Origin: Bugula neritina
Lineage: Eukaryota > Animalia > Bryozoa
Assembly: GCA_964035545.1 (NCBI GenBank)
Contig: OZ037766.1
Location: forward strand, 3,348,001-3,412,000
Direction: 5' to 3'
DNA: 64,000 nt
The notes under the pieces are model-generated. The model was not told where the DNA came from, searched no databases, and was given only the letters and a program-made list of their open reading frames with translations. Below, one piece after another: positions 3,744 to 47,587 of this stretch; position 1 is the stretch's first letter, and every line of letters begins with the position of its first letter. The position numbers and the translations under genes are program-made.

Positions 3744-3890
3744 ATGGCAGAACCCAACACAAATCAGGAAAACCCTGATGATGGTGGAACAGAAGTGGAG
3801 GAAACTGAGCCTGTAATTAACAGAGTATTTGAAATTCAGGACAGCCGGAGTAGACTTATGACTCAAAATAAACTATCTTTGTTCCTATAA
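3744..3890 (+). CDS. Acidic micropeptide, copy 1 (type A), 48 aa: MAEPNTNQENPDDGGTEVEETEPVINRVFEIQDSRSRLMTQNKLSLFL
   Basis: ATG 9 nt after acceptor ctcttttAG (3733-3734); upstream donor CAG/GTATGT at 3427; TATATAAAA at 3196; AATAAA near 3950. Core is shared with 7 paralogues; versus copy 2, 9 synonymous and 2 non-synonymous differences in the first 20 codons. Confidence 0.8.
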   Translation: MAEPNTNQENPDDGGTEVEETEPVINRVFEIQDSRSRLMTQNKLSLFL

Positions 3891-4427
3891 TAAGCTGCAC
3901 AGGGTAGAAATGAAAATTTAGAAATTGGGATTTAAAAGCTAAAAAGACAAATAAAGCAATAGCTATAATGTCGCAAAAAGTTAGGATCGTGTTTTGTTAG
4001 AATATAATATACAATATGATCATTATTCTCTAGCATATCATATTTTGCCCAGTGTGTTGAATTTTTTTTAGCTATAAATGCTCTCCATTTGCAATTTTGA
4101 GACTAATATAGTGTAAGAGGCAGACTAATGATATTAAAAATAATCCACAGTCTCACAGTTGTATATATAAGTATATTTCATGTGTATCTTTTATATGTGT
4201 GTTTATTTTCTTCTACAATTCTAAAACATGCTTCACAAAAACTCTAATAGTTTATTTCACTGTTGTACTGAGCAATATTTATATAAACAGCTATAATCAA
4301 TAGTACAAAGTATGCTGTTATACATACAAACAAAATTATGAATAAGTTGGACAAATTGTGACTTGATGAAAATGGTTCTATATACATTGTATATTCCTAT
4401 AATAGCTTCTTATTATTGCAGCTTAAA

Positions 4428-5758
4428 CCAGCTATCGTGAGAATAAATGGTATTTATAAAATAGCAGCTACAGTTAATCGAAAACTTGCTAAAACGCATA
4501 TTTTGTTTTCTTTATTTATTTAATAAATTGCTTTTGACACAAATAAACAAAATTTTGGAATAATTATGAATTATTTTGACAAATTTTGACCAAGTGAGTT
4601 CATGCCTAAACCCACTATTGATTTTTACTTGGAGATCAACAGCTTATTGTTTATCGATTATTAAGAATGTATAATTGACTGCCTTTTCTTATTACAGGTG
4701 CCCGTAGCGATGCTGTGTGCAGATTTTATAACATTATATAGTACAATCATACATTGTATGTAGAACAATTTTTATTTTCCGATGGTTTCCTGTGACAAAC
4801 TTTAAACTGCAAGTTGTTTCTCTCATATGTGTGAAGGCTATGTGTAGAGAGTTTGGACTTGGTTTGACTGAGTCAACACTTTTCAAAAATCATTCACTCA
4901 CTGTATATAACTAAGAACAAAGGTTTTTGTAGATAGAAGATGGAGAGTACGATAATAATTTATGATAACATGCACATATAATATTTGTCTGTAGTAAGTG
5001 TTGCTATTGCAGCCATCAGTTCTTAATGGTTACTGTTGGTCCAACAAGGCCGATATTTTAATATGTGCTCTTCGGTTGAGCAACATGTTATTAACACTAT
5101 TAGTAGAGTGCAATGATGTGCATTTTGTGAAAACCTGATTTATATATCAAAACAATAAATGTAATTTTTGTTGTTTATGTGTAATTTATACATTAATGAA
5201 CACAAAATAAACATTAGTTATATTAATATTCAATGAACTATATTATGATAATAATTAAGAATCTTTTCTGCGTTCCAAGTAAGTTTAGGGCTAAAAATGG
5301 GACATGGTGTGCAGATTTTCATGCGAATAATATGCTGAGCTCGTGTGGGTTAATGATTTAATTGGCTGATTACCATTTGGTGAGCACACTATTTTTATTA
5401 CAATTTACGTTTTAGCTTTTAGAGAACTGAATTAAAACAGTTTCCTATAGTTTGCATTTCTATTTTTATAACAGTCAAAGTCACTTTGCCGATGACGTAG
5501 TTTAAAAACAAACGTTTCTAGGCGAGCAGTAAAGTTAGACTCCAAGATCATTAGCTAATAAATTTCCGCACTTACAACACACGCGTTGTGTGTGGCAACT
5601 AGGTCGCTTCCAGGACGAGATTTCAAAATTTTTGAACTCTTTTTGGATAAGCCACCTTGTGTGGCCCTGTATAGAGCGAAATGTATTATAGTGCAATGCA
5701 CAAGCAAAAATGTATCACAGCCATCTATTCTCATATCATTGTCATAATAATAGCTAGC
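4428..5758. mobile_element. Possible old 1.3-kb TTAA-site DNA element (second copy about 21057-23476)
   Basis: Left ttaa-accagctatcgtgagaataaatgg versus a degenerate right end ccatctattctca...atagctagc-tcaa; no empty site is available. Confidence 0.3.
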
Positions 5759-6352
5759 TCAACACTCAACATATGAATAGTTGGATTTACCCATGCATCT
5801 ATAATACGTGTTTCAGTATATGCATTGGAGGGAATCAAGAAAGTATTGTGTTGTCATGGTCATATAATATGTTGACTGGGTCAAAGGATCAGTTCAGCTT
5901 TTGCTCACTGTTCTGATACTGTGGCAAGCACCAAATCCAAATCAATTCATGATCCTTTATCCTACTTCCCTGAGCTAGATTAAACTATATATACATGTTA
6001 TATATACATGTTATGTATAAATAGTGACAGAACCTAAGTACACCCAGAGCAAGGCAGAGGTGTAAGGAGAGCAAATTACTACTTATTATTCAAGAATAAT
6101 TATATTTTCTACTATAGGAATAGCTATATCCTACTATAATATAATACAGGAATATATTCTTTGGAATAAGAATCATTGTATAGGTAACTATAGGAGAACC
6201 ACATTACAGCACGAAATTATATTATCAACTGCCCAATCAGGTGAGTAGAATAAGTAAGTTATAATATAATGGAGAAAAGATGTATAGTTACTATTTGGTA
6301 TGTTCTATAACGTTGCATTATGTAATAGAGTAATTATCTGGTGCAAATCTAG

Positions 6353-6557
6353 GAAGCAGCCGTGGTCTAGGGGTTAGAGCTTTTGCCTATTAGGCACAAA
6401 ATTATGGGTTTGAGCCAAATTTGTGATGTTAGGAAAAGCATGCAGTTATATAATTGCTCTTGTGCCTCATCTGAATAAGTTCTTAGTACAATTTAACAAA
6501 AACGTCTTCCATCAGGGGTTCTCACAGGGATGGTGACTATATAAACTTGCGTGAGTT
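6353..6557 (+). mobile_element. tRNA-derived SINE in the 5'-UTR intron of micropeptide copy 2
   Basis: A-box-like tggtctagggg, degenerate B-box gggtttgagcc; 19-bp TSD ttatctggtgca(a/t)atctag at 6334-6352 and 6558-6576. Confidence 0.78.
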
Positions 6558-6676
6558 TTATCTGGTGCATATCTAGCAATCAAATCTAGTTGGCACACAC
6601 TGTTTCAAGTTAATCCATTTTTGAGAAATTTTATACAAAATATCATAGAACATTATTTTATACTATAGTATACAAA

Positions 6677-6793
6677 ATGGCAGAACCTATCAAAAACCAG
6701 GAGAATCCAGATGATGGTGGTACAGAGGTAGAAGAAATTGTGACTATAAACAGAATGTCAGAAATAAACAACATCTGTGTCGGCAGAAACTGA
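6677..6793 (+). CDS. Acidic micropeptide, copy 2 (type B), 38 aa: MAEPIKNQENPDDGGTEVEEIVTINRMSEINNICVGRN
   Basis: Kozak-like aaaATGG; acceptor AG 6667-6668; donor CAG/GTGAGT at 6241; conserved core. Confidence 0.8.
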   Translation: MAEPIKNQENPDDGGTEVEEIVTINRMSEINNICVGRN

Positions 6794-8744
6794 AAGAAAA
6801 TAGGCTATACAGCATATTATGTAATAGAATGAATGAAAAAATTGACTAATTTCTAATATTCTCCATTATAAATTGTGCACTACAACTCAAAACTCAAGCT
6901 ATAATAGTTATAAGAATATATTAGAAATTAAGCTAACAATTTATTAAATCTCTAGGACCTATATTTTAGGTAATATGTGAATTGTAATAATTGCATGCTT
7001 ATAGTAAACTAGCTATTGCGTACCAGTGATCATTGGCATCCTTGCCTACAATAGTCATAACTTTCATGCTATCTGTGTTTTGTATGAGCATTGAATTTTT
7101 CTTTTAGTTTATGAAGTGATGCAATACTACATATAATACTGTTAGCTTTAAATTCGTTATTTTAACTGTAGCTTTATTTTCACTTTTCCATCTTTTTGTA
7201 TATATAACATGTAGAGATATTATTGTCAGCTACACATGAATAGCAGGGTGAATGTGAATATTAAAGTATAGAAAACTGATTTAGTATTCTTTGAATAATT
7301 GAATAGGATAATTGAATAGGATACAAAGAATAGAAAAACTGCTTAGGTAACTTTGCTTGGTTGAGTACACAAATAAAGTCAACACATAAGTGCTCTCAGA
7401 ATTTCGGAATAGATAGCTTAAAACTGCCAACTCCTGGTTTCTCATCTGAATAACACACCACATGACTCAATAAATAACAAATGACATCATTCTCTCTCTA
7501 ACCTCAGGTATTGTCAGTGTGTAAGAGTCTATTTGGAGTTGTGTTACCTTGAATTAGATGAGTTTCTTAAGAAAACCTTTCAAGTTTACACACTGCAATA
7601 TTTATATAAAACGTCTAACCTACACAATTCCATAACATTTCACTACACTGCACTCTATATGATACATATTTACATTTATCTCTCATTACTTTGGAGGACA
7701 TGCAATAAAACTGAACTGTTTCTTTCTTAGCAAAAACTACAATTACAGTTTTTTAAAGCTGCAGTATTGACTTGGTCAACATTTGTCAAACTCGTTCATA
7801 CTTTTCCCCATTCAAATAGACAAATATATGCTAAGGTTTGTTATTTTTATAATATTATAATTCACACTTTTCACTTCAATTAAATATATTAGGTCCGCTT
7901 GCATGATGCAAGTCCACTTGTCAATACTTACACCCCTATATAGGCTAACATCTTTAAAAAATATACTGTATTATAAGCTATATATTAGATAAGAGGCATT
8001 ATATAATGATTATTATAAGAATAAACTCTAGAAAAGAAATGATGATGCACTGCCAATATAATATTAGTATAGTTTCATCAAAAGCAAAATAAAACAGAAT
8101 AAATTAATTTATATGTTAATGTAAACAAATAAATGTAACATATATAACTAAAAACCATGCAAATGCAATAAAATATATGAGGACAGTAATCTGAACAGTA
8201 GATAATAATCCATAAGACTATGCTCATTGTCTTATGATTCTACATTGATAAACAGTGTCTTAACATTGGTAAGTAAGCTTGTCAAATAATTAATTTTATA
8301 TACCTTTATATATTACAACTGTTTTTTTATCCTGTATGTCTTCCTGTATTAGCCAATGCAATGCCTGTTTAGACAGTCTGAAAAAAAACTTTTTTTTGAT
8401 TAACTAACATACCTTACAGTCTAAGTCTTGTATCTAAAACCATTTTAGCCTAATTTACTAAATGTCAAAATGATCAAATAAATCATATAATAAATTTAGA
8501 ATTTGCCCACAAAGCTGTGCTATAATTTTTAGATTAAATAAATGTATATATTGAGAGATTCACCATCATATATGCCTACACAAAATTATACTTTTATAAA
8601 ACCTGAAATTTTATATTTCTCCTGCACTTTATTTTATAAACTCTCTGAAATATGATGAATAATGTTTAAATAAGAACAAATAACAATAATAAATAAACTA
8701 TAAGCCAGCCCCCAATAAAAAGAATATAATATAGACTTGATATA

Positions 8745-8796
8745 TGACTTGGTCAACATCTGTCAACTCTTGTCAACATTTGTCAAACTTGTTCAT
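8745..8796. promoter_or_regulatory. TGACTTGGTCAA followed by GTCAA at an exact 10-bp period (8752, 8762, 8772, 8782)
   Basis: Directly visible; homologues at 26471, 33002 and 38054 with different spacers. Confidence 0.55.
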
Positions 8797-10528
8797 AACT
8801 TTATACTTTTTTGCATTGAAATATTATTTTGCTTCTACATTTGTCTTTTTATTTTAAGATCAGCATAATAAGCAATGAAGTTGCATTCTATACTAAAAAC
8901 TTCCCTTTTTGTAAATTATTTGTCGTAAGACGGAAAATTTCTATATTTTAACTGTTGCTATTTTATACTTTTTCTTGACAGTGTATTGTTGTCGCCTGTA
9001 TAACAACAAATATTCGTGATGAATCATTATTATTAATTAAAATTTGCTTACCAAATAAATTTTAAAATTTTTTAGCATAAATCTATAAATTCTGATTGGT
9101 TTGTTGGTTTTTTTTTTAATTTGCTTATCTTATAGCCCAAAATTGAATATAAATGTATACTGAAGAAAATACGTACTTTAATTAAGGTATTATACAATTA
9201 CAAATAATCATGCAGACAATGTTTAGCTGGTAATAATTTGCAAAATGTTCAAGTTTTATTATTTGATCAATGATCAAAATCATGCAATAACAGCGCTGCA
9301 AGAGGTAAACTCATTTCATAATTTAATACCATCTATATAAGTTGCTCGAACATTATTATAGTATGATTTTTAGCCTAGATATTTAAAGTGGTGTTTTAAA
9401 TTAAACTTACATATATTGAAATACAAATCATCAAAATAAGTATTTAATAAATTGCAATTTCCTATAGACAGTTTATGTCCCATCTTAAATAAAAATAGCT
9501 TGTAACTCCCTATAATGCGTAGGGGCATCATATATCAGCATTATATATTTATATATTGTATACATTGTAACTCATCTATAGATGAGTTACAATTAATGTA
9601 CACTATAGGGCTTTCTAATATATTATTATGTTCATAGAAATACTTTAACAAAGTTATCTTCCCTTGATTTATTTTGTGCTACAATCAATAGATTTTTACT
9701 ATTGATAACATAGCCAAATAATTTTCTTAATAGAAAAACAACCCATAAGGATCTCTTGAGTTTGAAAACAATTACTTTCCAGCTCTTGAAAAATAATATG
9801 GCAGCTGTAATTGATATCTTTCAAAATCAATAAACCTATAAAATGTATGTTATATAGAAGATTTCAACAGATGTTTACAAAAATCTTTAAACTCATAGAA
9901 TAATGTTCAATATATAAATTTTGCAATAAACTGCACTGTTGCTATATAACAGCATTATGATTGTATATTAATTATGTCTTCCATATTTTATAGAATCAAT
10001 TTGCTGCAAATAAGTTAGTATCCATACACAAAATTATAAAAGGTAGTTTTATTTCCATATAAATTGCTGATCTATAAGGTGTAGTTCAAATTTTAATATC
10101 AAATTAGTCTAGAGTGCTACATTGTTGTTTACTATTTTTGATTTTGTTATTAAACCCTAATAATTATAGTCCACTGCAGCTATAATCCATTTCTTATAAC
10201 AAAAGCTACACTTTACAGCGACATGAATTCTGAATTCAAATTAATTTAATTAAAACGCTATGCACTTATATATTTTTCTTCTGCAGTATAATAATATATA
10301 GTTGTTCAATACTTGAGGTGAAGTCAATGACAGTTATATGTTTTACTTGTTCATAACTGAGGTATTTGGTTAAGCTAACATTTCATCATCTAAACGTTTT
10401 GCAAAGAGACTCAATGAGAGCTCAATAATTCGGTAAGTATTTTGAATAATCACACAGCCTAGCAATCTCTATTTCTTGTGCAGATTATATTTTCCTTTAA
10501 AATCATCAACTTTTAGCAACTATACTTG

Positions 10529-10910
10529 TGACTCAGACAATATATTTGTTGACTGAGTCAAAAGTTTAGATTCAGGAATGCTTCTAAACTATAATTATAC
10601 ACTTGTGTTTTAACTTATTCTTCAACAACTATGTATTGCAACGGTGTAATGCATTACAGGTTTATCATGGTTTGGGAGAGATTTGATTGGCCAACAATAG
10701 CAAACACATCACTTTATTGGTTATAGTTGACTGACATCACTGGGTTCATATATAAAACATATAGAATTGAAAGCAAGCAGCTGTGTATATTTACTACCTT
10801 TGGAGTATAGAGAAACAGACACATCTTTGAATACTCAATAATAACAATATTGTCACATCTTATAGTAAACATATAATTGGATAGTTCATGACTCAACAAA
10901 TACTGCAGGT
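10529..10910 (+). promoter_or_regulatory. Representative distal promoter/first-exon module: double palindrome, ATTGG boxes, TATA, non-coding exon, donor
   Basis: TGACTCAGACAA 10529 and TTGACTGAGTCAA 10549; ATTGG near 10686 and 10716; TATATAAAA near 10749; CAG/GTAAAA 10909. Homologues at about 28170-28570, 33200-33445 and 39190-39560. Confidence 0.55.
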
Positions 10911-12145: not shown

Positions 12146-12845
12146 ACTAAACTTTCTGACAATCTATAATGATATAACTTGTCAGGCTACATGCAGTCTA
12201 CACACTTCTAGTAGTTTATATTGTGTTGTCCTGGTCAAACATTCTGTTGACTTGGTCAATCAATCTAGTGGGGGTTATTCCACGTTATGTGTGAGTTAAA
12301 TGGTGAAATACATTTTCCTATTGACAAACAAAGACAGTCTACTTTACTACATACTCATACTACTCACACTGGCTGCACTAATCCTTCATCACTTCATTCC
12401 ATTCATTTCATTCCAAGGGTGAAGTGAGCAAGCTATACTATACATGTTTACTATATCTGCAGGTAATGCTTTATAATTTATATTAATATAGGAACAGTAT
12501 AAAGCTATACCCTGAAACAGTGAATAGTCTGTAATAGAAGAACTATAGACGCAAACAAATAAATCCTAACAGTCACATTCAGCTCAGGTGAGTAAAATAA
12601 GTTCCTATATTATATAATACAGTGACGGTATATTGTAGTTAGATTGGTGTAATATGTTGGTTTATATAATATATGATATAAATTATAATATATAGATTGT
12701 ATATGTTTTCAGTAATAGAATACTCACCGCTATATTAGTTAACTCATTTATAGAGAAGTGCATACATCTTATTATAACATATTATCATTTTATACTGTAG
12801 CTGCAAATATAACAGCACGTGTTATACTTTATGCTGTAGTTCAAG

Positions 12846-12962
12846 ATGGCCGAACCTACCAAAAACCAGGAGAATCCAGATGATGGTGGTACAGAGGTAG
12901 AAGAGATTGTGACTATAAACAGGATGTCAGAAATAAACAACATTTGTGTCAGCAGAAACTGA
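12846..12962 (+). CDS. Acidic micropeptide, copy 3 (type B'), 38 aa: MAEPTKNQENPDDGGTEVEEIVTINRMSEINNICVSRN
   Basis: aagATGG; acceptor AG 12838-12839; donors CAG/GT at 10909, 12463 and 12588; TATAAAG at 12498. Confidence 0.8.
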   Translation: MAEPTKNQENPDDGGTEVEEIVTINRMSEINNICVSRN

Positions 12963-14874: not shown

Positions 14875-14879
<5 letters not shown>

Positions 14880-14964
<85 letters not shown>

Positions 14965-14967
14965 ATA
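14880..14967. repeat. (TA)n(TG)n microsatellite, paralogue of 1997-2077
   Basis: Directly visible. Confidence 0.97.
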
Positions 14968-16560
14968 ATAATATATCTGTAAGTAAATGCATGTCAGCAA
15001 ATAACATGCATGTACTAAATTTTTGTTTGAGTGGCAATATTTTTGTTTACATGCTGATTATAATGCATGCAAATTTTGTATATAATTCCCTATATGTGTA
15101 AGATTTTGACTTTGTGTACACACAGACTGGTATACTATAGCTCCGTGTCAATAGACGTTTCTACAAAAGCTGCTTTCATTTGACGATTGAGTTATTTATG
15201 TGTAAATCAAATACAAAGCTTTATTGCTGCCTGAAAATATGCTTCAATCATTTATTGTACAATTCAATTCTAGTCTATACAATAAAACTAATTACCATTA
15301 ACATTGAAACAAACAGCAGTTCAAAAGCCCATTAGAATGAATTACACAATGCGTCAATTGTTATGCAAACATAAAAAACAAATTTTTGACCGCACCAAGG
15401 CGTTTTGATATAAGGATGAGGGGATAAAAGTTATTGATTTCAACTATAGTAACTTGAGTATACTAATCTTTATATACAAAAAGCCACCCCTTAACTTTGT
15501 TAATTCTCCCAATTCTCATATAAATTATTTTTAACTGTTTAATGCTTATAGCTTTTATCAAAAACATAACACCATTCACTATTTAAGCCAGGAGCATTGG
15601 CAGTTTTCAGATTTAGCCTTTATAAATTTATTCAATCTTTTCTTTGCATCTTGTTAAGGACTTCTGAACTCTAGCTAACCATTTTATTAATTGAAAATTA
15701 ATCACTGCAGGTATAAACTGATTCACCGCAGCCATGTGCATGGTTAGCAGAAAGAATAGAAAGTTTCTGTTTGAATGGTTTATTATTCTTCTCACTGAAT
15801 ATTGTAATCAAGTATTATCATAGAGTAGGTTCAGTTCTTGTTAGCTACATGCTAATTATATCTTATACAAAGTTCCTTATATCACAACACTTCACGGCAC
15901 AATTGCATTCGACAAGATTACATTCAACTTTTATTGCTATGATCTATAAAATGGTATGACCTAGTCAACATTTGTCCAAACATACCAATTATCATGGCAA
16001 GGAGCCTGGTGTTTGTAATGTTTTTTTAATGAATATTTTATCAACTAGTAACCTTAACCATGACTCAATGCTGGTCGAATAAGCATTTGCAAGTTATATA
16101 TAAAACAGAGAGTATGACACTAGGCAATGCATTAGTCTACATCCATTCAACTTGTAAAGAGGATTTCTCACTTACACGTTAGTTAAGTTTCAACTACTTA
16201 TTTTATATCTTACTGTTTATACATCACAACATTATACTGTATAGTTATATATATTATACACGCAAGCTTGGTAATAGAGCTTGCTGACAGCAATACTTAT
16301 ACAAGGAACAGAATCAACAAAAACATCACAGGTATGTGTAATATATACAATCATATAAATTTTATAACTATTTTTGCATTAAAACATGTCAATTTTCCCT
16401 CACTGAGATTAGAACCAAAGTTATCTGGGTTACTTAAGATTTCGAGTTTACAATTACACTGCAAGGGCCACTGGGTAATCTCCAGGCTTTGTAATGAGAC
16501 TAAAAAAAGGACACACTATAAGGCAGTTGGAGGTGTATATGCAATATAACAAAGTCTATA

Positions 16561-19500
16561 CACAGAGAGAAATATTAGTGCAGTGCTTGCACTAAAGTTG
16601 TTCAAAGAGCCTTTTATTGTCAGTATAGCCTGCACCACACCTCTAATAGTTGTTAGACCTGCACTTATTTTGATGAAATTGAAAATTAATCCGGTTAGTG
16701 TAAGCTGAAAAATATTTTGTAGTAGCTCTGAAACCACTTAGTTGTTAAGTCAATGCTACTTTTCACAAGTATTACGTAATTATCATCCCTAGGTCTTAAT
16801 GAAGCTAAACAGTAATTGATAGGAGCAGAAAGTGAGATCAATGCTACAACTACATATGTTCAAGCAAAATTTTATTTACATAAGAATTATGGAACAATCG
16901 GCAGTTGTTCACCTAACGACATTATTCATTCACATGTGCACTAATGATGATCACAAACCTTTATAGGAAGCTAGGATAGAGTTGAACCCTACATTTGGGT
17001 CATTTTGATTGGTGCTTCCCAGTTAGATGCTATTTATACATTTTACGTGCAATTTATTTGAATACTATTGAAATATATGTGCATTTAAATAAATTTGAGT
17101 CAATTGCTTTCTATAATTGGCACACAAATAAATTTTTTTGCTCTGCATAAACCTATTAATTTTGCATTTTCTATATTTTTTGTTTTTTGAAAAAATGTTA
17201 TTATTAATGCATTTAATGCTTTTTTTCAACACAAATTTGGAAAAATTTAAATATTATTGCAAATATATCATATTAATGGTTATTTTATTTTTAGCAATTG
17301 ATATGAAAGTTATTTAAGGGTATATAGGTATATAATACTTAGTACCAAAACAAAAATTACAACCTAACTGAGGAGCATATAAGTGAAATGAAACTCCCTC
17401 AACCTACTAGCTGTTTATGATTTCGAAATTTTTTTGAACCCAAGACATTTTCAAATAGCTTGTTACCAGACTACTATTAAACATTGCCCCACTCCGTTTA
17501 TCAAAGACTTAAGTTGAATTTATCAACAAAAAATTTCAACTGCACATATCTCTTGCATGGGTAGTTTAGGCTTCACTAGTCAATTTCATTCATGGAAAGG
17601 AAAGCCAACTAATTTAAAATGTGTGTAAAAGAGAAATCAGGGAGATGCACCATTAAACTCCAATGTACTCAGTTATCAGCAAATGTGTTTCAAACAAGAA
17701 GCTTAAAATTAACAATGAAACAAGCTACTGAATAGTCAATTGTGGATCAGGTGAACCACTTCAAAAGCCTTGTGTAAACTACCTGGTGGAACAAAAGAAG
17801 ATGTTGCATAACAGAGCTATAGTAAGGAAATATTTAAATTGTAATTCAAAGGCAAGAAACTGGCTTACCAAGCATCGAAAGCGCAAAACAAAGGTTATTA
17901 CATAACAGCACATAGTTTTCATTCACAGCTATTGACAGAAGAAATATTCTGCCGGCATAGTGAACACCAGAGGCTCAGACTAAGAGGTTGTGCTTTGAGA
18001 TTCAGTGAATTTGTGCTTCCAAACAACCTCACAACATGGAAAACATTGAATCATTTCATCACATGGGTAAAGATTGCAGCTACCTCTCAGAGATAGAAGA
18101 TGATCACTTTCTTTCAGAGTTAGGAACTGAAGTTGTCATTGCAGCAAAAGGTAAGCTCAATCATTTGCTCAACGTTGTCATTTTATATCATAATGACAGT
18201 ATGACTATTGCTGTAGACAGATAATTGAATTTGTGCAACTATAACTTTTAAGAGACCACATTACCTGATATTTCCCAAACTACTCTATTCCTATATCAAT
18301 TTGATACAAGTTTTCCTGTAACAATATATTTTCAAAAAATGTAGCGTTTTATTTCCACTTCACCTTCTAGCAATTTGTGCTAAATTCATTAATTTGAATC
18401 CCCCCCCCATTGTAGAAGTATTCATATTGTTAATAATGCAGTTTAGCAGCCTACAAGTAGTTATTAGCCTTAAGCAGCTGCCAAGCTAGCTTCTTGTTTT
18501 ATAGCTAAGTACCAAATTGCCAATATTAGTGGTGAGTTGGCAAAGTTGGCAAAATTTTTCATTAACTTCCTTGTCACCAGTTTATTCTTTTATTTATCTT
18601 TGCACAGCACAATTAAATATATAAAAACATGTTTAAGTAGCAATATTTTTCTTGGTAGTACTTTATTTGTTTTTCAATTTATAGACATACTGAAACTTAT
18701 CAATATCTGTTATCTCGATATGAGGGGTCCATATAAAATGCTGACTCTAGCTTAAATTGTGATTCACTGACATTTTGAGATAATTTTAATGCAGAGAAGC
18801 TTCTATTAACTAAACTAATTATGCCCAACAGCTCTTGCATTTGTAATTAAGAAAGGAGTAAAATAAAATGCCGGCAAAAATTGTTAGTAAATTTTGATAA
18901 GCTCAAACTAACACAAACACTACGCAACATAATGATCATAACTTTGCCAAAGCCTGTATGGTTATTCAGAATCAAACGATTGGTACTATGGTGCTGAAAA
19001 TATGCTAAAAGATTCATAGCTAACATCATTGATACTATTAGTTTTGGCCTTAGACTTCAGCTTCTTCAAAGTTGAACTTAATTCATTTACGCTGCTTGTG
19101 ATTGTATATCTTAACCAAATCTTTACTGTTTATACTAATACAGTTTAAATATTACCCAACTTTTATCTTTTGTTGTAGATCCCATAACATTTTTTAAGAC
19201 CATGCACTCAAAGATGCTGAATAGGAGCACAAAAAAGAATTTGACCGCTACAAAACTTTGAATCATGCTGAGACCTTCAGCCTGCAAGCAGGCGCACTCA
19301 CCACTACATTACAAGCGTCACTGGGTGCTCTCGTCACTACACCTTACCCACTTTTCAAGAACTCAGCTGCCTTTTTTATACTACTCCTTCAAGCTTCCCT
19401 GACCACTCAACTCCTCTCGGAGTTCTACCACACTTTACTAACCGCTGGAATTAGTTATAAAACTTCCTCCTCCCCCCCTCCCGTATTTGGGTTACTATCA

Positions 19501-20263
19501 CAGACCTCGGACTTGCACACAGGTGTGCTAACCATTACACAACGCAACTGCTTGGTTATCGCTACACTACAGAGCAAGAATGTAATGACACACACTATGG
19601 TCTTAGCAGGTTCTGCTAATATTGAGAAAAGTTTACTGAATTTACAGTCGTAGAAAAATTCTGCAAATGCTTATTTTCATGTTTTTTTTCTTATTTTAAT
19701 CTTTAGAAGTTATTTTTTGTTGCATTTCTTATATTCAACTATCATATACAATAAAATCCACATTACTATACTCTCATACTGGTTAGAAGTTATGACAAGT
19801 TAGTTCAGAGTGATCAGTAATAATTTTTGCAGAAGCTTATTTCCAACAAAAATTAGAGCAGCATGGAACATTTATAAGTTCAGCTTTGAATATAACTTAG
19901 TTCAGCATTGAGCATATCTAAGATCATCATTGAACAGAAATAAGATCATCATTAAACATATATAATATCACTATTGAACATAAATAAGATCACTATTAAA
20001 CATATATAATATCACTATTGAGCATAAATAAGATCACCATCGAAAATATTTAAGCTCACCATTGAACATAACTTGGCTCATTGTGATAAATACAAAGAAT
20101 CAACTTCACAACTCTTGATATCAACATTGATCTAACATACTATTCACTGTGAACAGTACCTGACACTAATTTCTATTCACTGCTGGTCAATTTAGGGATC
20201 CAAAAAACGAGAGGTTTTAGTTGTCAGCTTATGTTCACTCTAACACTAATATTTCTCTCTGTG
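16561..20263. mobile_element. 3.7-kb non-autonomous DNA transposon, CACTA/EnSpm(CMC)-like
   Basis: Perfect 20-bp TIR cacagagagaaatattagtg / cactaatatttctctctgtg; TA on both sides; empty site in the paralogous block near 3653; subterminal 22-bp tandem repeats. Superfamily inferred from the CAC...GTG ends and 2-bp TSD. Confidence 0.85.
19880..20072. repeat. About 8 degenerate 22-bp tandem repeats (cattgaacataaataagatcac-like), subterminal in the CACTA-like element
   Basis: Directly visible periodic repeat. Confidence 0.85.
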
Positions 20264-20351: not shown

Positions 20352-20498
20352 ATGGCAGAACCCAACACAAATCAGGAAAACCCTGATGATGGTGGAACAG
20401 AAGTGGAGGAAACTGAGCCTGTAATTAACAGAGTATTTGAAATTCAGGACAGCCAGAGTAGACTTATCACTCAGGATAAACTACCTCTGTTCCTATAA
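20352..20498 (+). CDS. Acidic micropeptide, copy 4 (type A), 48 aa: MAEPNTNQENPDDGGTEVEETEPVINRVFEIQDSQSRLITQDKLPLFL
   Basis: First 34 codons identical to copy 1; acceptor AG 20341-20342; donor at 16332, with the intron expanded by a 3.7-kb DNA transposon. Confidence 0.8.
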   Translation: MAEPNTNQENPDDGGTEVEETEPVINRVFEIQDSQSRLITQDKLPLFL

Positions 20499-23448: not shown

Positions 23449-24060
23449 CTATCATTGTAATCATAATAGCTAGCTCAACACTCAACATATGAATAGTTGG
23501 ATTTACCCATGCATCTATAATACGTGTGTCAGTATATGCATTGGAGGAATCAAGAAAGTATTGTGTTGTCATGGTCATATAATATGTTGACTGGGTCAAA
23601 GGGTCAGTTCAGCTTTTGTTCACTGTTCGTAGAGTAGTGAAACAAGTACCAAATCCAAATCAATTCATGATCCTTTATCCTACTTCCCTGAGCTAGATTA
23701 AACTATATATACACATGTTATCTATAAATACAGTGACATAACATAAGTACACCCAGAGCAAGGCAGAGGTGCAAAGAGAGAAAATTACTACTTATAATTC
23801 AAGAAAAAGTTATATTTTCTACTATCTGAATAGCTTATATATCCGACTACAATATAATACAGGAATATATTATTCTTTGGAATAAGAATCATTGTATAGG
23901 CAACAATAGGAGAACTACATTACAGCACGAAATTATATTATCAACTGCTCAATCAGGTGAGTAGAATAAGTTATAATATAATGGAGAAAAGATGTATAGT
24001 TACTATTTGGTATGTTCTACGTTGCATTATGTAATAGAGTAATTATCTGGTGCAAATCTA

Positions 24061-24387: not shown

Positions 24388-24504
24388 ATGGCCGAACCTA
24401 TCAAAAACCAGGAGAATCCAGATGATGGTGGTACAGAGGTAGAAGAAATTGTGACTATAAACAGGATGTCAGAAAGAAACAACATCTGTGTCGGCAGAAA
24501 CTGA
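24388..24504 (+). CDS. Acidic micropeptide, copy 5 (type B), 38 aa: MAEPIKNQENPDDGGTEVEEIVTINRMSERNNICVGRN
   Basis: Paralogue of copy 2; acceptor AG 24378-24379; donor CAG/GTGAGT at 23957. Confidence 0.8.
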   Translation: MAEPIKNQENPDDGGTEVEEIVTINRMSERNNICVGRN

Positions 24505-30359: not shown

Positions 30360-31420
30360 TGTCCTGGTCAAACATTCTGTTGACTTGGTCAATCAATCTA
30401 GTGTGCGTTATCCCATGTTATGTGTGGGTTATCCCATGTTATGTGTGATCTGCGAATTAAACTACGTTGAAATACATTTTCCTATTCACAAACGTATGTA
30501 AACGTAGACTTTCTTTGTTTGTGTTTGTGTTTGTTACTCATACTACTCACACTGGCTGTACTAATTCTTCATTACTTCATTGCATTCATTTCATTCCAAG
30601 GGTGAAGTGAGCAAGCTATCCTACATGTTTACTATATCTGCAGGTAATGCTTTATAATTTATATTAATATAGGAACAGTATAAAGCTATACCCTGAAACA
30701 GTGAATAGTCTGTAATAGAAGAACTATAGACACAAACAAAGAACTCCTAAAAGCTTCATTCAGCTCAGGTGAGTAAAATAAGTTTCTATATAATAATATA
30801 ATACAGTAATAGTATATTGTAGTTAGAATGATGTATGTTAGTTTATATATGATAATAATTGAAGACCTCAAAGGAAAAATGGCATATGTCCAATTTTTCG
30901 AATTTTCACAAATTGAAAATTAAAGTTTGGAAACTTGCAACTGCTATCGATATGAATCAATTCTAACCAAATTTCATATTATGGTTTTTGAACATGTTTC
31001 AAACAACTAGACAAAAGGAAATTTGACCAAGTTTACATAAAATACATAATTTGCTAGCAATTTGCGCACCGTCATTGGTCAATTGTTATCACATGACTGG
31101 ACATAAGTTATTTTTCTTTTGTGATGACTGGACATAGGTCTTTGTTGCTTTGGGGTGGGTTTCAAATCCAGCCTTAAAACCATGGACAAAATTTGTTTTT
31201 TTCTTTGATAATTTTATGACTAAAACTTTAATACTTGAGCTATCCAAGGGAAGAAAAATCTCATTTTTTTTGAAAATGGACAAATGTCGTTTTTCTTTTG
31301 AGGTCTTCAATTATAATATAAATATTGTATATGTTTTCAGCAATAGAATGCTCACTACTACTATAGTTATAAACTCATTTATAGAGAAGTGCATACATCT
31401 AGTAATATGACAATACTATA
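30360..31420 (+). pseudogene. Type B' micropeptide locus with the coding exon deleted
   Basis: Aligns to about 12228-12770 (palindrome 30380, donors 30644 and 30769). After ...gagaagtgcatacatct (31400) it jumps to sequence matching about 13105 onward, skipping the acceptor and ORF found at 12838-12962. Confidence 0.75.
30861..31308. mobile_element. 448-bp MITE with about 32-bp TIRs and AATT TSD (Sola-like)
   Basis: gaagacctcaaaggaaaaatggcatatgtcca / tggacaaatgtcgtttttcttttgaggtcttc, flanked by AATT; empty site near 12681. Confidence 0.85.
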
Positions 31421-32019
31421 CTTTAAGTAATTATAGCTGCTATTTATAATCTTTATATACTAATTATAAATTCATTCTTATATCAAACTATAAAAATTCA
31501 TATCATAAGCAGTTTGCAAAAGTAACAACTATTGTAGAGGTTCACATAATTATGCTGCCTATATATGAACTATTAGCTACATATTATAATAAAATTGTTC
31601 ACTTCAACTCGATTTTCAAGTTTAACTGTGGCTTTAATTTTAACTTTCCAACTTCTTGCATATCATGGCGTAGAAATACTATTGCGTACATACATTATAT
31701 GCATTGATCACAGTGATTGTTATTAGCAAGATGAAGGTGTATTAGAATAGAAAACTGCCTCAGTACTTTTTACTTCAATCACACTGCATGGTACACAAAA
31801 TGAAGTCCACAAATTTTTTAATGATTTCAGAAATGATAGCTCAAACTTGCCAACTATTGGTTTATATCAGAATAACGTTTATATAATTATATTACTGAAC
31901 TTTCAATAAATGAGATCTTCCTCTCACTTAAACCAAGATATATTGTCAATGTGTAGAGTTTATTTGGAGCCGTGCTACCTTGGATTAGGTTAGTTTAATA
32001 GCAGCCTTATAACATATTT

Positions 32020-35171: not shown

Positions 35172-35252
35172 ATGGCCTCAGCAGAACCTATCAAGAACCA
35201 GGAACAGCCAGATGATGGTGGGACTGAGGTGGAGGAAGCTGAGATTATATAA
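35172..35252 (+). CDS. Acidic micropeptide, copy 6 (type C), 26 aa: MASAEPIKNQEQPDDGGTEVEEAEII
   Basis: aacATGG; acceptor ttttgttttAG 35160-35161; donors at 33443, 34768 and 34886; AATAAA near 35383. Confidence 0.8.
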   Translation: MASAEPIKNQEQPDDGGTEVEEAEII

Positions 35253-39067: not shown

Positions 39068-40851
39068 ATAAAAAGCAACCCAGATCTCACCCTAGCTCTT
39101 CCCAGTTGAAAGACATTCACCAAAAAGCAAGCAATTTAGTCTATGAGTATTATATATCCCTTTAAAATTATCATCAACTTGTAACAACTACTTGTGACTC
39201 AGACAATATAATATGTTGACTGAGTCACAAGTTTGAATCTAAAAAAATAAAGCACAGAAGAGGGTATTATTCACTGGAGCATACACAGCTTGTATATAAA
39301 CTGATTCTTGTTCCAAGGTTTTGAGGAATTTAATTGGTCACAAGTAGCAGGCTGTATTTGACTATAGTTGACTAACAACAATGCAGCTAGAGCACACTAT
39401 TCATATAAACACAAAGGCAAGCAGTTGTGTATATATTAAAAAGTACCATCCTAATTAGAGTCTTATATATAGAGAAGCAGACACAGCTTTTAATACTCAA
39501 TGATATTGTCACATCTTAATAAACATAATATTGGATAGCAACCTAACAGGAATTGCGAGTAAGAAGCTACACTATATATTATATTAGAATAAATTATATC
39601 AAATTGTATCATATTGTATTACATTATACTATATTATATTGTTTTATATACGAAACACTACAAGTAAATAGCATGCATAGTACTATTATTAGTACTATAT
39701 ATGGAAGTTATCCTGCAACTACAACTATAACACTGTATCAGAGCGTCAATATAGCTAAAAGCTGTGAAATTAGCTCACAACAATAGATTTGTTTCCTATA
39801 TTTAACCATGCTGGATTATATTGCTTATACCGTTTCTCACTTTAACTGTTTTAATTCAAATGACCTCACTACAAAAGACTGTTCATTATAATATAACTAC
39901 AAAGAATTTATGTTTAGTATTCTAAATTTATAAACTTTATAGGATTAGTTTAAAAACAATTGCTATACAAATATATAATTTCTGTTTGAAAAGTTACCTA
40001 TGGCTGCTGTAAAAATAAATTTTGGCAGCTTATTCGAGCATCAAATCATATCAATAAATATTCAGTTACAGAGCATATCAGCATACTATTACACAATATA
40101 GTTATATACAATCATATGTATATGATTATCTATTATACATAAGAAAATAGTTGTCCACACTTCCTGGCTTTATTACTTGTTAATAGTTTACAGTTTACAC
40201 AAACTACACACACAATACTGCATAACTTGTAGTTTTATATTGTCCTAGTCCTACATTGCGTTGACTTAGTCAATCCATCTAGTGTGGGTTATTCCCAAGC
40301 CCATTATGAGCTCAATGTTAGATAATAAATATTATATATACTTGCTTATACACCACAAGAGTGAGGGAATAAGTATAAGTACGTACAGTACACTGCTGAT
40401 TACTTTATTCATGTCATTCCAAGTGTGAGGACAGCAGTTCCCTTATCACTTATATAGCTACAGATATTGTGTTATAACATATTAATATAGGAACAGTATA
40501 AAGTTATACCCTGAAACAGTGAATATAGTCTGCAATAGAAGAACTGAACACAAACAAATAAATCCTAAAAGTCACATTCAGCTCAGGTGAGTAAAATAAG
40601 TTCCTACATTATAATATTATAGTGATGGTATATTGTAGTTAGAATGGTGTATGTATGATATATAAATTATAATGATATGTAGATATGTAGATAGTATAAT
40701 ATGTTTTTAGCAATAAAATCTTAATCGTTTACATCACTTGTTACAGTTGACCCAATTTTAGGAAGTGTATATACAACTTATTACGACGTATTATTTTTTA
40801 TATACTGTAGAACAAAATATCACATAATATTATTTTATACTGTAGTACAAG

Positions 40852-40989
40852 ATGGCCGAACCTACCAAAAACCAGGAGAATCCAGATGATGGTGGTACAG
40901 AGGTAGAAGAGATTGTGACTATAAACAGGATGTCAGAAATAAACAACAACTGTGTCAGCAGAAATTATACAATATTTGCAAGGGAATGA
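40852..40989 (+). CDS. Acidic micropeptide, copy 7 (type B'), 45 aa: MAEPTKNQENPDDGGTEVEEIVTINRMSEINNNCVSRNYTIFARE
   Basis: Near-identical to copy 3 up to its stop; acceptor AG 40844-40845; donor CAG/GTGAGT at 40587; TATAAAG near 40496. Confidence 0.8.
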   Translation: MAEPTKNQENPDDGGTEVEEIVTINRMSEINNNCVSRNYTIFARE

Positions 40990-41289: not shown

Positions 41290-41670
41290 AGTGCCTGTGG
41301 CTGTGCAGACCATTGTGTGCTTAGTAGTCCTTGCCACAAAGGTTACACTTGTAAGTGGACCCCGTCTGTTGGTGGTGACCTGAGCCCTTCTGTGTGTCGC
41401 CTCTTTTTGGCAGCTGCACTGAAAAATTTTTCTTCATCAACTGTGAGATAATATTTTAGTTTGCTCTTCAACTCGTGTGATCAAATGAGACATCCCCCAG
41501 GACGCTGTATTGATGCCAATAGTCGTCATTTTCCTTGTGCAGACATCTTTGAAGTGTAGCTGAGGTCGCCCATGACTTCGGCTACTGCTGGTTAGTTCAC
41601 TATGTAGAATATCTTTGGGAATGCGTCCTTTGTCCATGTGTCGAACATGACCAAGCCATCGCAGTCAGCA
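41290..41670 (-). mobile_element. RTE-clade (BovB-like) LINE 3' fragment
   Basis: LRWLGHVRHMDKGRIPKDILHSEL...GRPQLHFKDVC is the typical RTE post-RT motif. Confidence 0.85.
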
Positions 41671-44634
41671 TTTATGCTATAAGCTTGAAAATATGTCTAA
41701 AATCACAATATAAAAGCTCCATGAGATCATATGTCTCGAAAAGTATAATATAATTATTTTTCAAGCAGTACATTTGAATGTGGATGGAGCTTTAATACAG
41801 GGAAATATACTAATTTATGATATTACTATGACACATATAAACAACATTGCTGCAGTGGCATATTGTTGTTTATGCATACTATATTTATGGTCAACTGCTT
41901 TATGTTTATATTGATCAAATACTGATAACTAGATTAAGCTGTAGAGTTTAGCAGTAGTACATATAACAATTTGTAGTTATAAATTAATATCATAGCTATA
42001 ATAACTATATAAGCTTAGAATGGAGATAGTTCTAAGGTGCTGATCATTTAGTAAGTATACTTAGCTAATATACACGAAAAAATAAGATATGATATATAAA
42101 GGTATCATAAATATTTAGAATTTTTTCAGCTTTAGCATAATATGAAAACAATACTATGTCTATAAGAATTTTAGCACACAACGTCCAACTCGGATGACAA
42201 TAATCATAGAATGTGTATGCCCCCCCCCCCCCTGATAACAGTATTATAATAATGCCACAGATTTAGATACTAATACATCAACATTATACTACATGTATTT
42301 TACATAACCTATTAATGATGCAATAACTCTCTTTAATTCAAAGCTAGTCTTTTGTCCCTAAACAGGCACTTATTGTGTATCATCGAAATTTTAACTATAA
42401 TCTGCATAATGTATACTATAATGCGATGTGAAAAAACAAAACAGCTTACACAAATTCATCATTTGAGGCTTTATCATTCATAAAACACTTTGGTTGTCTT
42501 TATTTGTTTTAATTCACATAGCAAATATATCTGCATCATCTCTGGTCAAAGTGTATAGAGAATTGATTGGCTTAGTCAGTATATTTTTGACTCAGTCAAA
42601 GTTTAGTTAGTTTCACCCATTTAAACGTTCACTGATAGGTCACCATGAGCAGTTTTGTATTATATATTACAACTAAATAGCCTATAACAACCCGCATCAT
42701 ATTTCATATCTCACTCAATTATATAGTAAATAAAAGGGAGGACTGAGTTTTATTATATAAACAAGATAGCTAAGCGCACCCCTAAAAACCTTAGTATATA
42801 TAGCACATATATAAGTTTAATTCTTCAAATATAGAAATACACAAAACGATCACAACTAAATAAGATTAGCTTTAAAATATTATATCTTAAAAAGCAACAG
42901 AAAACTATATTATAGATATTGAAGGTAAGCAATTGTATTATTATAGTTGTATAAGCTACATGTGACGTAGTAGTGATTAAATATCGTTTTAATAGTGTCT
43001 ATAGGCTATTGTCTCATAAACAGAATTTGAAAAAAAATGTGATTATATTATCTTTTTGTAATTCTAACTGCATGTACTTATATATATCATAGTTTCAAAA
43101 TATTGTGCAGGTTAATACCTGTATAACATACATTTAAAAGAAGCAGTACATATATCAATGAAGTATAATGGCAGCAGTTATTACTATATCTATATTAGTA
43201 AATTAAATATAATTTAAACAGTTGTGAAACTGTTGGGTTTACAGTAGAGTGAGCTCGATTATAGTATGATAATTGCAGCGACTTTTGAATTTGTGACAGT
43301 CAAAATATTGTGTTGACTGAGTCAAAATGAGACAAAATAAATTATAGTCTTAAAAGTACTGATATCACCGCATTATTCAACTAAATCAAAACATACACAG
43401 ACCATAAGAGCAAGAGCTCACACCAAAAATCACTAATAAGAGTTTGGCAGTGGCATATAACAGTCTACAATATTCAAAGTACGTACACACAGAAGTCAAT
43501 CAGGACTTGGTTAGTTGAGCTGTGACTTGTCTATATAATATAATATAGTAGATATAACTTGACAAAACAACAGACACTGCAGGTAAGAAATTAAGTATAT
43601 CATACAAATATTTATTATCTATATAATTAACCCAGGATAGTATTATTATGGAAAATCAATCTAATATTTACACTAATTCTTATTAAATAGATGAAGGTAA
43701 AAAGTTCAAATGAAAAATAAAGCTTAACATTAGAGATATTATGTGCAGTAGGTTAAATAGATAGGAGCAGTAAGTGAGAGAGATGAGTAGGCAAAAAAGA
43801 CATTAATAATTAGTAATCAAAAGAATTTTATTATAACACATAAACCTATGTCCTGTATACATAATATTTAAAAGAAATTAAAATGCAATTTAAAGTAAAT
43901 AAACATTGAGCTTACCCCAATTAATAACCAACTTATAAATCTAAAAATATTTTTAGTAAGTAACAAACAAAGCTACTCACATTACTGTTGAACTGAGTTT
44001 GTTACAATAAGAAATATAACTGAATTTCAACTACACTATAAGACTAACAGTAATTAGTCCACAGTGTGGCATATGTATTATAATAACAAAAGGAAGTTAT
44101 GTTATAAATATGCTGGCATAAAAAATACAAAAGTTTTATCACAATGTGCAAATGTGAAAAGCATACATTTTATAAGTATGCTGAGGGGGAAATACTACTA
44201 TTCTATTTATAAAGTTGGGTGGGCTGTTGTGTTTCAAATACATAGAGGTAAATGGGTAGCATGACAAAGGTTATATAAGAACCATTGTTAGAATCATAGT
44301 ATCTTGTTTTTTCATCAACTCTTTTGAATAACACTGCCAGCATACCTTGAGCTAGCTGAGCATAACAAAGCATAGCAGAGAGCAAAGGGCATTCTATTGC
44401 CATTAGGTTCTTAGAAAGTTTGTATATCTATACATGAGAGGAGAGTTTCAATATGGTAATTATACTGTATAGTGTGAAGGTGTCCTCACAATAATATTGC
44501 AATATTATCTCAATTGAGCTATCAGGTGACTATTATCCACTCCAGCTGAAAAATTATGGCAGAGGAATTTTCAACACTGCCAGATACATATATGTAATCT
44601 CATTTGTTATGTTAAATTCATAGTCATAGTCATT

Positions 44635-44644
44635 GGGAATTCCC
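44635..44644. promoter_or_regulatory. NF-kB consensus site GGGAATTCCC
   Basis: Exact match to GGGRNWYYCC, about 1 kb upstream of the proximal promoter module of copy 8. Confidence 0.5.
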
Positions 44645-45015
44645 TTCTATTACCTTCTACAGTAATCGACACTCGCAGTGATTGGCTGTATAATATAGGA
44701 ATTGCATTATAATGTATATCATGGTATGTTCTGTCGTGCAATACAGCCTTATACTATATTCTATTAGTATATAGTTTTAAATAATGTGAAATATATTCAA
44801 TAGTTTCAATATGGCAGCTACTGTGGTGTACTTTCACAATAATATTCTAATATTATTTCAATTGGACCAACAGATATCTAGCATTATCCACTCCTGTTTG
44901 AGAAATATCATGCTGCATGCATCACATGGCAGAACAACGCAGCTACTCTACTCCAATGCACTTCTACTTTGCTATTATTAGCCCCATTTGTTATATTAAA
45001 GAGGCAACTGTCATT

Positions 45016-45025
45016 GGGACTTCCC
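45016..45025. promoter_or_regulatory. NF-kB consensus site GGGACTTCCC
   Basis: Exact match to GGGRNWYYCC, retained in the diverged duplicate unit. Confidence 0.5.
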
Positions 45026-45920
45026 TTCTATATTATCTCATAGTACCACACCTCTCAGTGATTGGCTGTATAGAATTGCATTCTAATGTTATATTATATA
45101 TTCTATTATATACACTACAGTCTTATATTATAGGTTGTATAGTAGTAAATACTTTTAAATCATATTATGTTATATTTAACTGCAATATAGTATTTTATGG
45201 TGCATTATATGGTAATCCAGAAATGTAATATATATATTATTTGGAACTTAATTACATTATGTTTCATCTTACTATAATAGTCAGAGTATTATGTTGTGCC
45301 TAATTAAATAATATAGTAGCTAGTATGATTAGTTGCACATTCTTATATAAATTAAAAAATATATATACAAATATTATATATTAATGGTAAAGGGAAGAAA
45401 TTATATATGAGTTAACCAATGGTATGCTTGCACAATTAGGCCATGGTAACTGCGTTATAAATTTGTGAAACCATGTGAAACTAAATAATGCTAATAATTT
45501 CTGCACTTTGATCATACTACATTCTACAGTTGTGTAGCAGTAGCACATGCAGGTGGCTATAACCTTTACAGCTTTACATAAGATTAATCTTGTGACAGAC
45601 AAAATATTTTATTGACTGAGTCAAAATTTTAGACAGCAAAAAAACTCTTGAGGGTACTGATCATTAACATCAATCAGCCAATAGTAAACACTTCATATGA
45701 ACTCACAAGCCATGTTTTTACTTTAGAGTAGATGAACCCCAGCTACTAATAGAAGAACAACACATCAAAAGACACCTAGCAAATTCTAACACTAGCAAAT
45801 AACAAACAAATATTGTAAGTCCTGAAACGCAAAAGGAGATTCCATGATTTATCAAGATCAGCTATAAATCAACAGCATTGTATGGTAGACTGCAGGTAAG
45901 AGTTTAAGCTATACTATATA

Positions 45921-47238
45921 GGGGTAACGGGGGCACAACGGTCATAGGGGTACAAAAAGCCGGCCAAATTGTGAGAGAACTTATTAACTTAGAGTTGTGA
46001 TTTTTTTTTCATAAAAAGATATTGACATAATTATTCAGCTTTTGTAGTTTCAACACTTGCGGAACATACGTGTTGAAAAGGCGAGTAAAAAGCTGTTTTT
46101 ACCTACTTTTTGTAAATTTTTTAGGACGTCGTTAAAGCCTCATAACTTTTTACACTCAAAGGCAAGAAGCCTATAGATTTTACTAATATTGTTGCCATTG
46201 CTTGTCTCTACAATGCTCAACTAGTATAACAGCAAACACTGAAATAAAATTTCCTTGAGGCATATTTATTCTCAATTTGGCCACACGGGGCACAATGGGC
46301 CACGCTGACTGGGGCACAATGGGCCACCTAATTATTGCACCCTGATCACTGTTATTAGTTTGTTTGCCTAAAAAGTTGGTTGAACTGTTACTAAAATCTA
46401 TAGATATAGCCATTTCTGACCTTTTTGTAAAATATCAAAGACATCATGGTAAGACTACAAAACTACAAGTTGAAGCTCCCCTAATATATACATCTGGTGA
46501 GGTTAAAGCTTTGCAATTTTATACATAATACAAAACACTCTGCTGTTTCTACTAGTAGATTATAGTCATGATAATCATTATATATTACACCATTGAGGGA
46601 ATATACATGTATTTGACTGAAATAAATTGTGATTTGCTCATTTGCTTCCCCTCTCCCCTCCGTACTCCAGTGACAAACCTCAGTCATGCATGCACCTTAG
46701 CTACAATTCATAGAAAAAAGTCTACTCGGATTTTTGTAGTACACGTTACTGAAGTTTTTTTTTGATAAACGTTGCTCTGAAGTGAAAATAACAGAACATT
46801 TTTAGTTCTAAACAGTAGGTAATGATAATGGCACTGCAGAACCGAGTGACGTGCGTTTGATTTTGCCTTCCTCTGCTAACCGTAGTAACACAAACTGTAC
46901 AGCTAAAACATGAATTTTGCTGTAGATCTGAAAGAGAATCTTTATTTATTTGTAATATTAAATAAATAAAAATTAGATGTAACAAAATATACGCAAAATT
47001 TCAATATATATTTGTTGTGTCTCATTGTACCCCGGTACCGGGGCACAATGGGCCGATTTTTTTGTCGTGAACATTTCATTATTCTGAAAGTTGTGAGAGA
47101 GATAGAAACAACAAACTGATACCTGTAATAGACAACATATGCAGCATTAAGACTAAAGATTATTGAACTAGTAACTTGAAAAACAGACGAATGAGAGCAA
47201 CAAATGCAAAATTCGGCCCGTTGTGCCCCCGTTACCCC
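45921..47238. mobile_element. 1318-bp non-autonomous Tc1/mariner(pogo)-like element in the 5'-UTR intron of copy 8
   Basis: 21-bp TIR ggggtaacgggggcacaacgg / ccgttgtgcccccgttacccc; TA TSD; internal ggggcacaatgggcc repeats near 46287, 46311 and 47040; empty site near 34905. Confidence 0.9.
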
Positions 47239-47506
47239 TATTATGTATTAGCCCATAACATTATTATATATAGAGAAATATTATACTATAATTTAGACTG
47301 CTTTTCAATAACTTGATGGTGAAGAAAAGTGTATATAAGGCCTATTTATATTTTCAACTTTATTGTATCATTCAGACATACATTATGTATTATGTATTAC
47401 ATTATGTATTATATTATGTACATTTTTTTCTACTTTAGCAAAAAACACCCCATTTTTGTGCTGTTCAGTTTTATTCCTAGAAAAATGTTGTTTTAGAGTT
47501 TTAAAC

Positions 47507-47587
47507 ATGGCCTCAGCAGAACCTATCAAGAACCAAGAACAGCCAGATGATGGTGGTACTGAGGTGGAGGAGATTGAGACAACATAA
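47507..47587 (+). CDS. Acidic micropeptide, copy 8 (type C), 26 aa: MASAEPIKNQEQPDDGGTEVEEIETT
   Basis: True start lies inside track ORF 47363-47587, 10 nt after acceptor AG 47495-47496; donors at 42925, 43583 and 45896; AATAAA near 47750. Confidence 0.8.
   Translation: MASAEPIKNQEQPDDGGTEVEEIETT

Follow-up and report, generated by a model that had tools for sequence, protein, structure and literature searches.

A family of short acidic peptide genes with a constrained core motif in the bryozoan Bugula neritina

Introduction

Micropeptides encoded by small open reading frames (smORFs), such as those of Drosophila tarsal-less, are shorter than 60 amino acids (aa), combine a conserved short motif with a variable tail and are missed or mis-called by annotation; in tarsal-less, the short repeated motif is the active unit. 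MicroProteins of the plant type are truncated, single-domain relatives of larger proteins, with which they compete. Here we describe a family of acidic peptide genes in the bryozoan Bugula neritina that invites comparison with both. Eight members lie in a 64,000-nt stretch of DNA (GenBank assembly GCA_964035545.1, contig OZ037766.1, positions 3,348,001 to 3,412,000 of the forward strand), hereafter the window. A preliminary description of the window had proposed eight plus-strand ORFs of 26–48 aa with an invariant PDDGGTEVEE core and read them as an unannotated intracellular peptide family.

The family resembles tarsal-less in peptide length, in its conserved motif and variable tail and in having been overlooked, but shows no sequence similarity to it; each gene here encodes one peptide instead of contributing to a polycistronic RNA, and whole genes have been amplified together with a common upstream element. 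Its short forms, like plant-type microProteins, keep a single binding unit and are without the second one present in longer paralogues, whereas the parent has just 59 aa and is mostly unfolded, and competition between the forms is presumed. The closest described sequences are the B. neritina proteins EB796_017616, EB796_017617, EB796_013313 and EB796_013314 (GCA_010799875.2), encoded in tandem, which belong to the same family and to its 59-aa C3 subtype. They are models from AUGUSTUS annotation (PMC7576161), have no assigned function and have starts placed at least 10 codons farther upstream, across the predicted acceptor. With these four on record as hypothetical proteins, the label 'unannotated' is only partly correct; protein searches returned no window-type protein (26–48 aa) with an NCBI source. 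As far as our searches reach, the family is undescribed as such and is of the lineage-restricted smORF kind.

Results

All eight ORFs were borne out by translation (Table 1) and all contain PDDGGTEVEE; DGGTE occurred once in 60 simulated windows. The invariance of the core is confined to the window, as members elsewhere have DDG, GE, Q and V variants. Every ORF has G at +4, and the A at −3 that had been assigned to all of them is present in six, the two type-A genes having G. The window genes therefore combine ORFs of fewer than 100 codons with a purine at −3 and G at +4, the properties we looked for in microprotein genes. A recount of the first 20 codons of A1 and B1 gave exactly the nine synonymous and two non-synonymous codon changes reported before. 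Family peptides have a net charge of −4 to −8 and a pI of about 4.1–4.4; the value of −7 for the two 26-aa forms was reproduced by computation. Genes are arranged in the order A1-B1-B2-A2-B3-(dead copy)-C1-B4-C2. They amount to three subtypes and their recent duplicates and do not count as eight independent cases, because most of 1.1–14 kb is duplicated at 14–32 kb (window self-comparison) and types B and C have a non-coding 5' exon in common. This exon is 85–92% identical between B and C, so that the absence of alignable flanks applies to the A/B comparison.

Selection was evaluated with codon models of the 20-codon core. The ratio of non-synonymous to synonymous rates (omega) was 0.205 for 21 distinct cores, 0.116 for window-type cores of this genome and a second lineage (see below) and 0.100 for the window cores alone, with twice the log-likelihood difference from omega = 1 at about 45, 35 and 24, respectively (kappa on a grid). 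Purifying selection on the peptide core, as the preliminary description had argued, is thus upheld: omega lies at 0.10–0.21, and neutrality (omega = 1) is rejected both in the window and family-wide. Each of the invariant motif residues P, D, G, T and V is encoded by two to four different codons, and between lineages the first 60 nt are 93–97% identical compared with about 80–91% in aligned flank columns. Most of the signal comes from deep branches. The subtypes are deeply diverged at synonymous sites, which suggests that the family is older than the species, and the overall pattern fits birth-and-death turnover around a constrained core. The window ORFs are very probably real coding genes.

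The family had been taken for a cluster confined to the window, but genome searches identified 17 intact genes, distributed over five loci and three chromosomes, with eight of the genes in the window. Labels C2, C3, C5 and C6 with a position in Mb denote places in the genome, whereas bare C1 and C2 denote the type-C genes of the window. Two members of 42 aa lie at C2:2.62 Mb (721 kb upstream of the window), one of 40 aa at C5:4.13 Mb, one of 59 aa at C5:2.44 Mb, and five of 59 aa plus one broken copy at C3:28.77 Mb. Twenty looser genomic motif matches and one weak hidden Markov model (HMM) match were inspected, and no member was found among them. All real homologues from searches elsewhere came from B. 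neritina GCA_010799875.2 or from contigs of the Joint Genome Institute (JGI) whose label is a mitochondrial accession of B. neritina; their flanks are about 72–88% identical to this genome (BLAST), and we treat them as a second Bugula lineage, which we infer to be a sister species in the B. neritina complex. In this lineage the A1 orthologue (L016:10001) has the same core (two synonymous and no non-synonymous changes) with a shorter and different tail, the C1 orthologue (L021:285) likewise has 26 aa and the B4 orthologue (L018:933) has 38 aa.

The core that unites the family is N-x3-P-x-D-G-G-T-E-V-x-E. The two 59-aa subtypes have a second common element, W-E-x5-Y-L-x-K-Y, and alignment of the C5 with the C3 proteins over their C-terminal halves holds even without the core (E = 8e-5). 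AlphaFold places a helix at residues 27–58 of the 59-aa form and no secondary structure before it, so that in the unlinked 59-aa members the motif is joined by a C-terminal helix, predicted to be amphipathic, and the disorder proposed earlier agrees with the prediction for the N-terminal half. Little or nothing of this helix is present in the window copies, leaving the motif as the one part common to the family; motif sharing between short and long forms, with the helix missing from the short, is the arrangement sought in a dominant-negative microProtein. Types A and B close with R-[MV]-x-E-I, which is suggestive of a remnant of the 59-aa helix. In type C, the stop falls at most four codons after the motif in both lineages and apparently arose by a small insertion; its presence in both places the truncation before the lineage split. 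The type-A tail differs between lineages in length and frame around an unchanged core. Beside the unlinked members with their extra helix, the window forms look like truncated derivatives of the longer form. The N-terminus is acidic and hydrophilic (grand average of hydropathicity −0.8 to −1.2) and, by inspection, contains no signal peptide, in agreement with the preliminary description; this speaks against secreted peptides (neuropeptide, antimicrobial or biomineral matrix).

Each window gene has a strong upstream donor (CAG/GTRAG or CAG/GTATG, the slash marking the splice site), and a YAG acceptor lies 6–10 nt before the ATG in all eight, as proposed, type A having another 2 nt before. In B2, B4, C1 and the dead copy, the donor ends a predicted exon of about 96 nt that contains no ATG and differs between copies by frame-breaking indels; it has four copies genome-wide, all in the window. 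The distance from acceptor to ATG is 6, 8, 9 or 10 nt and varies modulo 3, so no upstream frame is kept and the ATG is the start. The subtypes have no donor within the coding sequence in common. Each gene thus appears to consist of a non-coding exon spliced to a single coding exon.

The genes also share a palindrome, TGACY-N-RGTCA, which is a new element relative to the preliminary description. The window has 26 copies (about 12 independent sites) against 0.09 expected, all within the gene cluster, and one stands 283–375 nt 5' of the donor in each of the eight genes (Table 1). Further copies lie downstream of genes, for example at 7768, 8745, 13904, 35512 and 47858. The 13-bp form is unenriched genome-wide (98 copies versus 126 for a control), and 16 of the 98 fall in the window. 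Beyond it, a palindrome is found 670–980 nt upstream of both C2:2.62 Mb genes and of several C3:28.77 Mb genes; most members of the family have the element on their 5' side. Besides the module listed in Table 1, similar promoter-like modules occur at 10550–10909 and 39217–39570, and all are candidate alternative first exons. Some palindrome copies contain an AP-1 heptamer, which is absent from half. We found no description of the palindrome in the literature.

One other clear palindrome hot spot exists, a tandem array of CPEB-like genes on the minus strand at C3:15.003–15.06 Mb. It has RNA-recognition motif and CPEB ZZ exons (CPEB ZZ domain, E = 4e-9) and holds 11 palindromes, in pairs or triplets, between units. 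Palindromes were also seen in pairs 46 nt apart at C6:6.75 and 6.83 Mb, as a group of three near GST-like exons at C3:29.50–29.52 Mb and as a pair among macrodomain-like exons at C2:17.04 Mb (exons of the latter two read by eye).

Searches with phmmer and HMMs of protein sets of 5.8 billion and 1.84 billion sequences returned no homologues outside B. neritina, with the limit that small proteins are often unannotated; apart from Bugula-labelled sequences, the matches were repeat-driven or marginal (an FN3-repeat protein and two unrelated ones). The family is hence not detected outside B. neritina, rather than absent. That it belongs to no known family, as first supposed, is in line with Pfam (none above cut-off), PDB sequences (0) and Foldseek (0). 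The best peptide match in the ESM Atlas (0.85) is a lead only, Rfam gave no match, and scans of JGI metagenomes found nothing, although near-genome records may be missing there. In the literature DGGTEV was found in no more than four papers, all on plant proteomics; DGGTEVVE occurs in plant mitochondrial malate dehydrogenase (PMC2851655). This enzyme, a UBA3-like exon with DGGTE and the fibronectin-III loop P-x-D-G-G-S-E are chance look-alikes with identity over 5–8 residues, and were rejected because the similarity does not extend to the flanks, Pfam and PDB give no match and their motifs lie inside folded domains. The LC8/DYNLL-binding motif needs Gln at position 0 of its TQT-type core; nearly all members have Glu there, and Gln occurs only in one C5-type variant. 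LC8, Hsp70 EEVD, beta-TrCP, tankyrase, EF-hand, PP2A-B56 and FN3 motifs were considered, and all fit poorly.

Table 1 Predicted genes, exons and palindromes of the cluster (positions in the window)
Feature	Position	Strand	Remarks
Gene A1, coding sequence	3744..3890	+	48 aa, one coding exon; upstream donor 3427
Gene B1, coding sequence	6677..6793	+	38 aa; donor 6241
Gene B2, coding sequence	12846..12962	+	38 aa; donor 12588
Gene A2, coding sequence	20352..20498	+	48 aa; recent duplicate of A1; donor 16332
Gene B3, coding sequence	24388..24504	+	38 aa; recent duplicate of B1; donor 23957
Gene C1, coding sequence	35172..35252	+	26 aa, motif only; donor 34768
Gene B4, coding sequence	40852..40989	+	45 aa; donor 40587
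Gene C2, coding sequence	47507..47587	+	26 aa; candidate donors 45896, 43583
Predicted non-coding 5' exon of B2	12492..12587	+	no ATG; ends CAG/GTGAGT; putative splicing
Predicted non-coding 5' exon of C1	34670..34767	+	85% identity with the B2 exon
Predicted non-coding 5' exon of B4	40491..40586	+	no ATG
Dead ninth unit, duplicate of B2	30381..31470	+	palindrome and 5' exon (30673-30768) kept; coding exon deleted
3.7-kb insertion in A2 intron	16566..20262		dispersed-repeat pieces and 22/44-bp tandem array
Span of all palindromes	3056..47868		matches span of gene cluster
Palindrome, A1	3056..3066		371 nt 5' of donor; A2 copy at 15957; kept in L016
Palindrome, B1	5873..5883		368 nt 5' of donor; B3 copy at 23588; kept in L018
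Palindrome, B2	12248..12258		340 nt 5' of donor; degenerate partner just upstream
Palindrome, C1	34411..34421		357 nt 5' of donor
Palindrome, B4	40262..40272		325 nt 5' of donor
Palindrome, C2	45613..45623		283 nt 5' of nearer donor; kept in L018
Extra promoter-like module	43314..43583	+	palindrome then donor; conserved in L018

Other features of the window and of family loci

The insertion in the A2 intron contains a plus-strand frame (18012-18221) without a Pfam match, which by eye we take to recall an exon of an inter-alpha-trypsin inhibitor heavy chain. Downstream of the cluster, a 325-aa open frame on the minus strand (49987-50961) has no Pfam match above cut-off. It is followed at 54311-58781 (+) by a long terminal repeat (LTR) retrotransposon, with gag, protease and integrase by Pfam in several frames and 116-nt terminal repeats that are 99% identical, and by another tandem array (59380-64000), unrelated to the first, whose repeat unit measures about 4 kb and which runs past the window end.

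Among the other loci, the C3:28.77 Mb cluster sits between two UBE2J-like E2 ubiquitin-conjugating genes and an IDO gene, with WAP-like Cys-rich repeats farther out. In the second lineage, a broken TRAF-type MATH fragment (L018:1314-1726) lies about 270 nt 3' of a type-B orthologue and is absent from the window.

Discussion

We favour, with some reserve, a reading of the sequences in which the peptides, intracellular and unfolded, use the motif to bind one partner. One dimeric transcription factor binding TTGACY-N-RGTCAA would drive the promoter of each gene and switch the genes on together. Docking of the unfolded peptide on a single globular partner would involve a turn and a short strand. 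The 59-aa form is probably an older two-handed adaptor or inhibitor whose helix would give a second contact, and the window copies, having mostly or wholly lost that helix, would bind by the motif alone, occupying or titrating the partner. The dose would rise by tandem duplication while individual copies arise and vanish, such that copy number sets the dose.

Several observations weigh against this reading. None of the known motif classes that we considered matched the core. On recent branches, selection is weak or its test lacks power, type B alone having an omega of about 0.34 on few changes; the C3 tail has an omega of 0.56, which is not clearly below 1, the C5 orthologue pair differs by three synonymous and nine non-synonymous changes, and several second-lineage copies carry changes in the motif. 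Both C5 genes and three of the five C3 genes of this assembly have no exact palindrome nearby. The direction from long to short form is read from the distribution of forms on an unrooted tree.

The genes could be real and yet act in bulk, as abundant acidic disordered Ca2+ or metal buffers or as chaperone-like or storage peptides. Their charge, pI and copy number suit such a role, and Bugula is lightly calcified, but conservation is tied to particular positions, P, G-G, T and V among them, and outside the motif the acidic residues are free to change; a skeletal matrix role would call for the missing signal peptide, and the spacing, by inspection, does not fit an EF-hand loop. We regard bulk action as unlikely. 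Of the same low probability is a scenario in which only the 59-aa genes function and the window cluster consists of decaying truncated duplicates whose selection signal predates truncation. One unit has indeed lost its coding exon, tails are frameshifted between lineages, and the recent-branch omega and second-lineage motif changes given above would be expected under decay. All eight cores are intact, however, and their start context, acceptor, donor and palindrome are retained; the window subtypes give an omega of 0.10, the core is better conserved between lineages than the aligned flank, and the type-C stops common to both lineages place truncation before their split.

It is quite improbable that these ORFs serve as the first coding exons in longer, spliced genes. 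Type B has a donor-like GAG/GTAGAA at +51, and a GenBank AUGUSTUS model in VXIV02000527.1 (GCA_010799875.2) joins the C5 micropeptide exon to the N-terminus of tuberin, splitting tuberin in two. The subtypes have no donor in common, though, codons past the +51 site are conserved and change synonymously, conservation between lineages extends to stops and tails, window self-comparison finds no duplicated downstream coding exons, and no other long protein with the motif at its N-terminus emerged from an HMM search of the full library. The fused model is probably a prediction artefact, because tuberin has its own ATG-containing start exon and the model's donor lies inside a small ORF that runs on into the homologue of the conserved C3 helix. 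Least probable of all, and very much so, is that the conserved stretch and palindrome form a dispersed repeat or non-coding element. Some paired palindromes elsewhere in the genome do lie within simple repeats, and a likeness to the type-B tail persists in the sequence just 3' of the type-C stop; against this stand the strong synonymous bias in one frame, the restriction to five loci genome-wide and of the extended element to the window cluster, and the lack of matches in Rfam and, for the peptides, in Pfam. The distribution is that of tandem whole-gene duplication and not of a transposon.

Where such motif-binding peptides would act is a more tentative matter. The C2:2.62 Mb pair adjoins a kinase gene (Pkinase by Pfam) that seems to resemble testis-specific TSSK. 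Because of this neighbour, and because in other animals CPEB genes function in gametogenesis (PMC5544531, PMC5536308), our guess is the germ line, which we hold with less than even confidence; a stress or immune response is the next.

The family is a clean, selection-backed orphan micropeptide family in a little-studied phylum, in which multiplication of the gene goes along with the apparent reduction of a small protein to its bare motif. For the present the reach of the finding is restricted, as the searches detected nothing outside Bugula neritina. The palindrome provides direct access to the timing and site of gene activity, and the 10-residue core makes an easy bait for the partner. In a broader and admittedly doubtful extension, the new linear motif and its partner may form a lineage-specific regulatory module, in which a 59-aa adaptor gave rise to motif-only competitors and the palindrome-binding factor co-activates the CPEB-like array, possibly in gametogenesis.

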